The translations under genes and the position numbers were made by a program. Positions 37,041 through 55,001 of a DNA stretch of 64,000 nucleotides are shown in pieces. Source of the stretch: Podarcis filfolensis (taxonomy: Eukaryota); assembly GCA_964270895.1 (NCBI GenBank), contig OZ185438.1. One strand, written 5' to 3'. How positions within the stretch are numbered: the first letter of the stretch is position 1; each line of letters starts with the position of its first letter. The notes below the pieces were generated by a model. The model searched no databases. It saw nothing but the letters and a program-made list of their open reading frames with translations, and was not told the DNA's origin.

Positions 37041-37124
37041 ATCGCTTCAATCCATTTACTGAATCAAACCCCTTTGTGGAAACCAAATATGCATCCACTT
37101 TTCAGCTCTGTCACTTTACTTCAG
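37041..37124 (+). CDS. PICALM: Putative PICALM cassette exon 13a (84 bp): DRFNPFTESNPFVETKYASTFQLCHFTS
   Basis: ctctttctggttctctag acceptor, CAG|gtataa donor, open frame, phase 1-1, two NPF motifs. Confidence 0.75.
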
Positions 37125-37399
37125 GTATAATACAAATGCCTTGAGGGTTTTACACTTGCTTGTTTTCAGAGGTGTAAAACATGGCATTTGATGATGTTTC
37201 CCCCCCTGTCTTTAGATAGTGTAAAATCTTCCCTTTTTTTTAGAAGTTGTTGCTAGATTGCTTGTGTGTGTGCTTTAGGTCACGTAGTTGTTGTCTTAAC
37301 TTAGTGTCCAAATAATTGGTTAAGCAGATAAGAGTGTCCTGTTCCTTTCTCTCTGTAACTGTTCCTTCTTTGCTCTTCTGCTTCCTATGCCTTTATCAG

Positions 37400-37483
37400 A
37401 TTCTTTTTGTGGTCCTCAAGCTTATCCTCCTAACGCTTCCCATTTCCGCAGTGAGCCCTCAACTGTAGCTGGCCTATTTGGAG
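37400..37483 (+). CDS. PICALM: Putative PICALM cassette exon 13b (84 bp): DSFCGPQAYPPNASHFRSEPSTVAGLFG
   Basis: Polypyrimidine tract of about 60 nt plus tcag, GAG|gtaggt donor, open frame, phase 1-1. Confidence 0.75.
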
Positions 37484-37945
37484 GTAGGTAAAAGGCTTTT
37501 GAAGCCCAGGAACTTGGTTTAATTATGTAAACTTGGGTAAAATTATGCAGACATGCCCATTTCAGTTTGTAAGCAAGCTGGAGAGTTGTATGCTTTTCAT
37601 CAGCTGATCAACACTTAAAAATAATTCCAAAACTGATGCATCAAAATGGGTCCAGCTTGTTTTTAAAAATAACTTAGCCTGTCCTTGCTGAAAAGGTTGC
37701 AAATCTAAAGACTGCTTTAATAAGTTTTTTCACTGTATCACTTTTTGTTCATAGAAAATCACAGATTGAAACGAGTGGCAATTGACAGCGATTTGGCGGG
37801 TGCACTTCTAAAGCACCCAGCATGACATTATAACTGAAAGCCACTGTCTTTATTTTCTTTTATCCTGGAAATGTTTTAGCTTTAATTATAAGAACTTTGC
37901 AAACATTGATCCCATGAAACAGGCACATTGGTCTTCTCATTAAGT

Positions 37946-44350: not shown

Positions 44351-44374
44351 AATGGCATGCATTTTCCACAATAC
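44351..44374 (+). CDS. PICALM: PICALM exon 18, 24-nt microexon: NGMHFPQY
   Basis: aacag|AATGGCATGCATTTTCCACAATAC|gtaagt; matches the known 8-aa CALM insert. Confidence 0.93.
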
Positions 44375-47908: not shown

Positions 47909-48013
47909 CCATCCCAAATGGGAGGAGTACCAGTAATGACGCAACCAACCTTAATATACAGCCAACCTGTCATGAGACCTCCAAATCCTTTTGGTCCTGT
48001 ATCGGGAGCCCAG
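47909..48013 (+). CDS. PICALM: PICALM exon 20 (105 bp): PSQMGGVPVMTQPTLIYSQPVMRPPNPFGPVSGAQ (NPF)
   Basis: AG/GT boundaries, phase 0-0. Confidence 0.97.
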
Positions 48014-52435: not shown

Positions 52436-53320
52436 AATAGAGAGAGTCCTGGGCTTGGATACAAAGGGCTGCTTCATGCATGCGTCAGGCTGCCCAGTGG
52501 ATTTTCACTTTCTAACAGTAGGCTTCTCCTCCCCGCTCAATTACGCCATGTAACTATTACTGGAAATCAGGTTTTCTTTTCTTAAAAAGTGTGCCCGTGC
52601 AGAATGCATTGCTGCTGTTCAAGGAATGGAGTAGTTGGCTGTGAAAGTCTAGTTTGGCCCATGTTTGTCAACCTCATCCCTTGCAAGCCACTTCTGTCCT
52701 TCAGGCCCTACTTTCCCCCTGTACTAGAGAAAGTGTAAGACCACAGCAGTTAACAGTGAACAAGTGTTTGTATGGTATTTTAATGGTTAATGTTAATACA
52801 GATACGTATGTTTCTCAAGAGAACATAAGGATATACAGCCAGACACATGCGGCCCTCTTTCTGCTGCTTATGCAGCTTTTGGCACCTAATGCTGCACATT
52901 GGCCATCCATGGAATGTAAATAAATGTTAAGTGAGGCCTGGTTGTCATAGGTTGTTTTGAAAGCTAACTTCAGGTCTAGCTTCTGCTGTTTTCAGAAACA
53001 CACTCTGTTGTGCCTAGTTGGGACTGGTAACTATTGGAGACCATTGCCATACCCTCTGGATAAAGTGCTGGTGATTTCTGCCAGTCACATGCCAGAAATT
53101 CACCTTTGCCTATAGGTAACCTTCTAATGTCTGCATCTGTCATACCATTGGGGCAGATTTCAACTTAGCATGCAATCAGACCTTTTCTTTTTAACCAGCC
53201 CACTTCAGTCCTAACTACCTGTCTTAAGCCCCTCCTCTCCATCACTACATTTTCTGCCTTCATATTTCTGTCATTGAGGCCTTCTTTTTCTCTTTCCTTC
53301 TCTGACATCTTCTTTCCCAG

Positions 53321-53413
53321 CTGTCTGCAGCATCCAGCCCATCCACTCAGAGTCCACACAGAGCTTCAGGGAAGGATCCTTTTGCAGAGCTCTCCCTCCA
53401 GGATTTCTTATAG
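53321..53413 (+). CDS. PICALM: PICALM alternative C-terminal exon 20a: LSAASSPSTQSPHRASGKDPFAELSLQDFL* (exon to donor at 53423)
   Basis: Pyrimidine tract of about 40 nt plus cccag, phase 0 matching exon 20, 30 sense codons then TAG, DPF motif, donor TAG|gtattg 10 nt later. Confidence 0.88.
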   Translation: MSAASSPSTQSPHRASGKDPFAELSLQDFL

Positions 53414-53604
53414 GACAATTTAGGTATTGCATGTTAACTCTGGGGGCACTGCAAGCTCGGATAATGCCTCGTTTGCTAACGTCCCTAGCAATATTCATCC
53501 TCACATTAAAATGACACAGTCTGGGGCTTTGTAAATTTGCATGTTGTTATTCTGTGACCTGCTATAAACCACGGCTGCTAATGTGGGATGCAAGAGAAGA
53601 AGAA

Positions 53605-53659
<55 letters not shown>

Positions 53660-54986: not shown

Positions 54987-55001
54987 ATACAATTCATGTA
55001 A
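54987..55001 (+). CDS. PICALM: PICALM terminal exon 21, coding part: IQFM*
   Basis: cctcag|ATA CAA TTC ATG TAA. Confidence 0.96.
   Translation: MQFM

Follow-up and report, generated by a model that had tools for sequence, protein, structure and literature searches.

A 103-nt segment of the last intron of PICALM, found at positions 53321-53423 of the 64,000-nt stretch of Podarcis filfolensis DNA analysed here (the window), is very probably a conserved alternative cassette exon that corresponds, in PICALM, to the last coding exon of SNAP91/AP180. Skipping of this exon would join the upstream exon ending in GAQ to the last exon and give a protein ending in IQFM, whereas inclusion would give a protein ending in GAQ-LSAASSPSTQSPHRASGKDPFAELSLQDFL and turn the usual last exon into 3'UTR. 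PICALM is a core clathrin adaptor and among the strongest Alzheimer's disease risk loci (PMC9776874). The exon indicates that PICALM can also make a C-terminus of the AP180 type, one kept under strong purifying selection. As a sequence, the exon is not new, being already contained in public automatic gene models, some of them from lizards of this family. The gap is functional, in that this near-invariant alternative ending of an important adaptor protein has apparently gone unstudied.

Position of the exon in the PICALM gene

Motif searches and tblastn placed PICALM on the plus strand, with most of the gene lying inside the window (exons from 17858 to 54998). The closest protein was Podarcis muralis PICALM isoform X2 (P0282; XP_028581833.1; 732 aa), for which tblastn revealed a single true in-exon mismatch and a match that takes in 53315-53410; indeed, the final 30 residues of this protein correspond to the candidate exon. 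In-exon differences from the window came to one residue each in P. muralis, P. raffonei and Lacerta agilis. The features that define the 3' end of the gene are as follows.

47909-48013, plus strand: penultimate PICALM exon, constitutive and coding, encoding PSQMGGVPVMTQPTLIYSQPVMRPPNPFGPVSGAQ
53222-53320, plus strand: upstream intron flank, a block that aligns between lizard, snake and birds and includes TTCTGTCATT at 53266-75
53321-53423, plus strand: very probable alternative cassette exon, 103 nt, in the last PICALM intron, phase 0
53424-53433, plus strand: 5' splice site GTATTG overlapped by TGCATG, weak, with no G at +5
53505-53510, plus strand: ATTAAA hexamer, candidate poly(A) signal, 92 nt after the stop
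53538-53543, plus strand: second TGCATG, about 115 nt into the intron
54987-55001, plus strand: start of the last PICALM exon, ag followed by ATACAATTCATGTAA

The penultimate exon ends GGA GCC CAG at 48013 and is followed by gtgggt, a strong donor in phase 0, with the encoded protein reading ...GAQ. In the intron that follows, a long polypyrimidine tract runs into the acceptor AG at 53319-20, after which 53321-53410 comprise the 30 codons of the tail, whose C-terminal stretch after the K reads DPFAELSLQDFL. The stop codon TAG occupies 53411-13, and a 10-nt spacer, GACAATTTAG (53414-23), separates this stop from the GT donor (53424-25). The last exon opens ATA CAA TTC ATG TAA at 54987, corresponding to IQFM and a stop. 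Both candidate junctions are in frame, with skipping yielding GAQ-IQFM and inclusion yielding GAQ-LSAASS...DFL, each followed by a stop codon.

An earlier, sequence-only reading of this DNA had proposed that an exon here exchanges IQFM for an AP180-like tail. All of the coordinates it gave, namely those of the acceptor, the 30-codon ORF, the TAG, the donor, the two TGCATG copies and ATTAAA, are correct, and the exon is a genuine coding exon, conserved and annotated in PICALM isoforms. Calling the exon hidden was, however, wrong, as RefSeq isoforms from the same family (Podarcis, Lacerta) already end in the tail.

Elsewhere in the intron, a perfect (ATT)17 microsatellite is found at 53606-53656, some 180 nt past the tail-exon donor, and is followed by sequence resembling a repeat element.

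The window also contains other alternative PICALM exons. That at 37041-37124 encodes DRFNPFTESNPFVETKYASTFQLCHFTS, with two NPF motifs, and is present in P. muralis X2, P. raffonei X1 and L. agilis X1, with a related exon being found in chicken and zebra finch. A second, at 37396-37485, encodes (S)DSFCGPQAYPPNASHFRSEPSTVAGLFG and appears in long lacertid, snake and bird isoforms. A 24-nt micro-exon at 44351-44374, reading AATGGCATGCATTTTCCACAATAC between ag and gtaagt, encodes NGMHFPQY, contains GCATGCA and belongs to the lacertid X1 isoforms of 740 aa. A 24-nt PICALM exon, the same size as this lizard micro-exon, has been reported to switch in human erythropoiesis (PMC3973340).

Conservation of the exon and its splice sites

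Orthologous DNA was compared from the rattlesnake Crotalus horridus (L003), two ratites (L001 and L002), a heron (Cochlearius; L007), a honeyguide (Indicator; L008) and tuna (L004). The acceptor AG, the open frame, the position of the TAG, the 10-nt spacer and the GT donor are kept in the rattlesnake and in the four birds. Across these species and the lizard, the spacer reads GACAATTTAG, GACCATTTAG or AACAACTTAG and the donor reads GTATTG or GTATCG, with the GT being kept in tuna as well. The donor is weak, with G at +5 missing in every species compared. The start of the last exon, ag followed by AT.CA.TT.ATGTA. (encoding I/MQFM and a stop), is common to the rattlesnake, the four birds and tuna.

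Within the coding part of the tail exon, lizard and birds share 82-83 of 90 nt and 29 of 30 residues. As such, 7-8 of the 90 nt but only one residue differ, meaning that change has been almost all synonymous. When third codon positions were considered, lizard and birds were identical at 22-23 of 29 sites in the tail exon, as compared to 16-19 of 30 in the neighbouring constitutive exon. High third-position conservation is the typical pattern of regulated alternative exons. Alignable intron extends for about 100 nt upstream of the exon and about 25 nt downstream. Such agreement at the nucleotide and amino acid levels, together with the hundreds of annotated isoforms that carry the tail, marks the exon, as judged from sequence comparison, as conserved far beyond chance.

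In Crotalus horridus (L003 65030-65053), 12 nt present in other snakes are deleted in frame, which removes VSLQ, such that the tail ends ...KDPFAEDFL rather than ...KDPFAEVSLQDFL, with the DP, the DFL and stop, the spacer and the donor all being retained. Either variation in this lineage or the assembly itself could account for the deletion. A tail that is without VSLQ suggests, therefore, that the middle of the tail motif tolerates change.

Distribution of the tail among annotated proteins

The survey of annotated proteins began with a phmmer search using the ANTH-domain exon to reach full-length proteins, and was followed by region searches, one with a fish protein and one with a turtle protein, and by a search with a profile built from a snake backbone and tail rows. 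The phmmer search returned fish PICALM ending ...AQPSAASSPSSQSPLRAPGQDPFAHLSLKDFL and Tachysurus AP180 ending ...PKKPPTKDPLADLNIKDFL. The fish-protein search revealed the fish-type tail in all 119 of the newly returned teleost picalmb isoforms, while the profile search found the tail at the end of 54 of 119 sauropsid PICALM proteins, these coming from lizards, snakes, one turtle and many birds. Many further tail-bearing turtle isoforms were added by the turtle-protein search. A tail identical to that of the window was seen in isoforms from Varanus, Podarcis, Rhineura, Hemicordylus, Sceloporus and Tiliqua, and the RefSeq X1 isoforms of P. raffonei and L. agilis also carry the tail. In mammals, isoforms X18, X19 and X21 of the capuchin Sapajus apella end ...KDPFAELSLEDFL, with 29 of 30 residues being identical to those of the turtle/bird tail. 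The fetched proteins that end in DFL number 321 in total, and the DP and the terminal DFL are the only residues invariant among them.

Two annotation peculiarities were noted in the course of this survey. In Naja naja, a 30-aa 'hypothetical protein' (KAG8137035.1; P0559), MSAASSPSTQSPHRPSGKDPFAEVSLQDFL, is an annotation artefact in which the tail exon was taken for an ORF of its own. Many bird models annotated as 'PICAL protein, partial' read through the penultimate donor instead (...GAQVCIF).

Structure of a tail-bearing transcript

At the RNA level, a Logan contig of 3638 nt (L005; run SRR33509424) encodes the full 732-aa tuna picalmb isoform. When this contig was mapped on the tuna genome (L004), the tail exon was seen to be spliced straight to the exon encoding MQFM and a stop, after which comes the 3'UTR. 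Across the junction, the tuna mRNA reads ...GATTTCTTGTAG AGCATCTCTTTAG on the upstream side and ATGCAGTTCATGTAA... on the downstream side. Accordingly, at least in tuna picalmb, the tail exon is a cassette with the normal 3'UTR being kept. From the conserved donor and spacer and from this one fish picalmb transcript, we infer that the exon is also used as a cassette in the lizard.

The distance from the tail stop to the final junction is 13 nt in the tuna mRNA and, by sequence, 10 nt in the lizard, snake and birds. Stop codons lying up to about 50-55 nt upstream of the last exon-exon junction are exempt from nonsense-mediated decay (NMD). With its stop only 10-13 nt before the final junction, the tail mRNA should therefore escape NMD by the 50-55 nt rule, in line with what had been predicted from the DNA alone; in the lizard, where the stop precedes the exon's own donor by 10 nt, the tail-bearing mRNA should likewise not be an NMD target.

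In the same tuna genome, two consecutive picalmb exons are each found, at 100% identity, at two places about 2.1 kb apart (Thunnus L004 20247-20905 and 22347-22977); either the pair was recently duplicated in tandem or the assembly repeats it.

Probable kinship with SNAP91/AP180

BLASTP comparison of KDPFAELSLQDFL with KDPLADLNIKDFL revealed 8 of 13 positions to be identical and 12 of 13 to be positive (E = 8e-6 in this single comparison), bearing out the similarity to the AP180 C-terminus that the sequence-only reading had proposed. In a MAFFT alignment, the PICALM and AP180 tails occupy matching columns as far as the DFL with which both end. At the DNA level, the SNAP91 locus of the catfish Tachysurus (L006) contains an exon ending ...GCA CCA and followed by gtaagt, and then a tail exon that begins, after ag, with CTG TCT (LS) in phase 0. 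This tail exon ends GAC TTC TTA TAA, after which come TCTGTAAG and gtatga, with 8 nt separating the stop from the GT (L006 21855-21868). At this one catfish locus, comparison of intron positions with PICALM hence finds the phase-0 boundary, the 'LS' start and the DFL-stop end all to be common. The GTATGA after the stop suggests that the SNAP91 tail exon may also be penultimate, with the 3'UTR being in a further exon. In a second SNAP91-like locus (L009), no tail exon was found across the last 13 kb, a region that contains many N.

Because teleost picalmb and amniote PICALM both have the exon, and because its boundary and ends are common to SNAP91, the tail exon very likely predates the CALM/AP180 (PICALM/SNAP91) split. 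The sequence-only reading had proposed such an ancestral exon, a view now backed by the SNAP91 exon match and by the distribution of the exon in fish and amniotes. Invertebrate LAP/AP180 proteins end comparably, with ...LDPFGSL in the nemertean Lineus and ...NDPFGAL in the sea slug Plakobranchus. The DPF-[GA]-x-L of these two proteins lines up with DPFAEL of PICALM and DPLADL of AP180; however, the Lineus and Plakobranchus tails are without the last six residues (SLQDFL), and the likeness spans only some six residues. As such, these invertebrate endings hint at a still older motif, as a lead rather than as demonstrated homology.

Alternative readings and regulation of inclusion

Were the ATTAAA hexamer to direct polyadenylation, the tail exon would instead serve as an alternative terminal exon, giving the same tail with a short and different 3'UTR, a route that had also been offered for this DNA. 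The hexamer lies 92 nt beyond the stop in the lizard, and the aligned bird region, itself A/T-rich and of low complexity, is A-rich with AATAAA-like strings. Yet ATTAAA is absent at the aligned rattlesnake position, being seen in the lizard alone, whereas the donor and the 10-nt spacer are kept in every sauropsid examined, and the sole transcript, from tuna, splices onward to the last exon. Use as a terminal exon is thus improbable and, on the grounds of conservation and the tuna transcript, was rejected as the main mode; as a minor route, it could still operate alongside the cassette. It is, moreover, barely credible that the exon is a decaying relic, or an annotation artefact propagated by homology, with no present function. 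The database entries bearing the tail are mostly automatic predictions, the tail exon goes unmentioned in the literature found and one published study takes IQFM as the CALM C-terminus, but the ORF, both splice sites and the position of the stop are intact from fish to primate, 29 of 30 residues agree in the lizard-bird comparison and likewise in that of capuchin with turtle/bird, lizard-bird nucleotide change is nearly all synonymous and an assembled full-length tuna mRNA contains the exon.

As for the control of the conserved cassette exon, inclusion is probably regulated, given the weak donor, the conserved flanking intron and the highly conserved synonymous sites. A more specific model, in which inclusion is a neural or muscle switch driven by RBFOX through downstream UGCAUG, we consider to be rather unlikely. 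The lizard offers two TGCATG copies within 120 nt downstream (53428-33 and 53538-43), GCATG occupies exactly intron positions +6 to +10 in the lizard (TGCATG), rattlesnake (CGCATG) and tuna picalmb (AGCATG), the weak tail-exon donor probably needs an enhancer and AP180, the paralogue with a constitutive tail, is neuronal (PMC4203807, PMC11246429). Nonetheless, in the four birds, where the exon, spacer and donor are kept, there is no GCATG within about 300 nt downstream, and GTCTG, GTCCG or GTCCA is found at +6 to +10; the second TGCATG was found only in the lizard among the aligned loci. TGCATG is, furthermore, frequent, with 73 copies in the window on both strands as compared to 57 +/- 8 expected, and with a density of about one copy per 1.6 kb on the plus strand, the lizard pair is only mildly unusual. 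In the literature on PICALM with RBFOX, no paper tying RBFOX to the tail exon was found. In squamates and fish, RBFOX may contribute to inclusion.

The tail motif and its possible function

The tail, in which an acidic-hydrophobic motif comes after a Ser/Pro-rich linker, is presumably disordered, acting as a short linear-motif region rather than as a folded domain. The sequence-only reading had described a DPF plus an acidic-hydrophobic tail. Most PICALM tails do contain DPF, but the F is not invariant, as only the DP and the C-terminal DFL are; in this position, AP180, Sphaerodactylus and Erythrolamprus present DPL, while Paroedura presents DPY. A strict DPF was thus rejected as a conserved feature, given that the residue varies between F, L and Y. 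That DPF serves as an AP2 motif in this lizard is plausible. The reading of LQDFL as a clathrin box was also rejected, with the L-Phi-x-Phi-[DE] register missing.

In AP180, the peptide PAKDPLADLNIKDFL ('Site 2') binds clathrin weakly, via both hydrophobic and Asp residues, and its mutation led to less clathrin sequestration in cells, with assembly in vitro not being slowed; mutation of IQFM in CALM had no effect in a cell assay (PMC5004861). The same study treats IQFM as the CALM C-terminus and describes the CALM and AP180 C-termini as not conserved (PMC5004861), a statement that holds only when the tail exon is ignored. By analogy with Site 2 of AP180, the tail would add a low-affinity contact with clathrin and possibly a contact with the AP2 appendage. 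Such an extra weak contact with clathrin, and perhaps AP2, would most likely render the included isoform more AP180-like.

It may be, and we advance this only tentatively, that the textbook IQFM is a derived ending, produced when the ancestral terminal coding exon is skipped, and that the tail isoform is functionally distinct, with altered clathrin/AP2 engagement in particular tissues. Skipping would then run translation four codons into what had been a 3'UTR exon; the ancestral exon would still be constitutive in AP180 and would be foreshadowed by the DPF-G-x-L ends of invertebrate LAP. If this is true, then an 'AP180-like CALM', whose tail barely differs among turtles, birds and a primate, would be a distinct and unstudied isoform of a leading Alzheimer's-risk gene.

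Searches of the literature on PICALM/AP180 splicing, the strings SLQDFL and SLKDFL, picalma/picalmb and two CALM/AP180 reviews revealed no study of the tail exon. The PICALM splicing papers found treat other exons, namely, exon 13, exon 17, the 24-nt exon and D18-19, and, when the lizard exons are counted, the human 21-exon numbering has no place for the tail exon. The earlier expectation, that isoform predictions might already contain the exon while its function had gone unstudied, is in agreement with both the annotation and this literature.

Comparison with known systems

The closest known forms are the annotated PICALM isoforms ending ...KDPFAELSLQDFL, including P. muralis XP_028581833.1, P. 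raffonei X1, L. agilis X1, turtle and bird X-isoforms and those of Sapajus, whose tails are identical to that of the window or one to two residues off. These isoforms use the same ...GAQ junction and the remaining protein matches the window exons, such that there is no material difference from the window.

The teleost picalmb tail exon, ending ...AQPSAASSPSSQSPLRAPGQDPFAHLSLKDFL and a stop, sits likewise between the ...AQ exon and the MQFM exon, and has GCATG at intron +6 to +10, as in the lizard. It differs from the lizard exon in having a spacer of 13 rather than 10 nt, in being identical at 23 of 30 residues and in starting with PS where the lizard starts with LS.

In the last coding exon of SNAP91/AP180 (...PKKPP, A or T, then KDPLADLNIKDFL and a stop), a phase-0 intron precedes the LS and the first codons are CTG TCT, as in PICALM. 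Common to the AP180 and PICALM tails are a Ser/Pro-rich start, KDP-[FL]-A-[ED]-L-x-[LI]-x-DFL and a stop, and a GT 8-13 nt after that stop. The two differ in that the AP180 tail contains DPL and a basic KKPP linker, whereas PICALM contains DPF and HRASG, and in that the tail is the C-terminus of AP180 in the forms seen, whereas in PICALM it is an alternative to IQFM.
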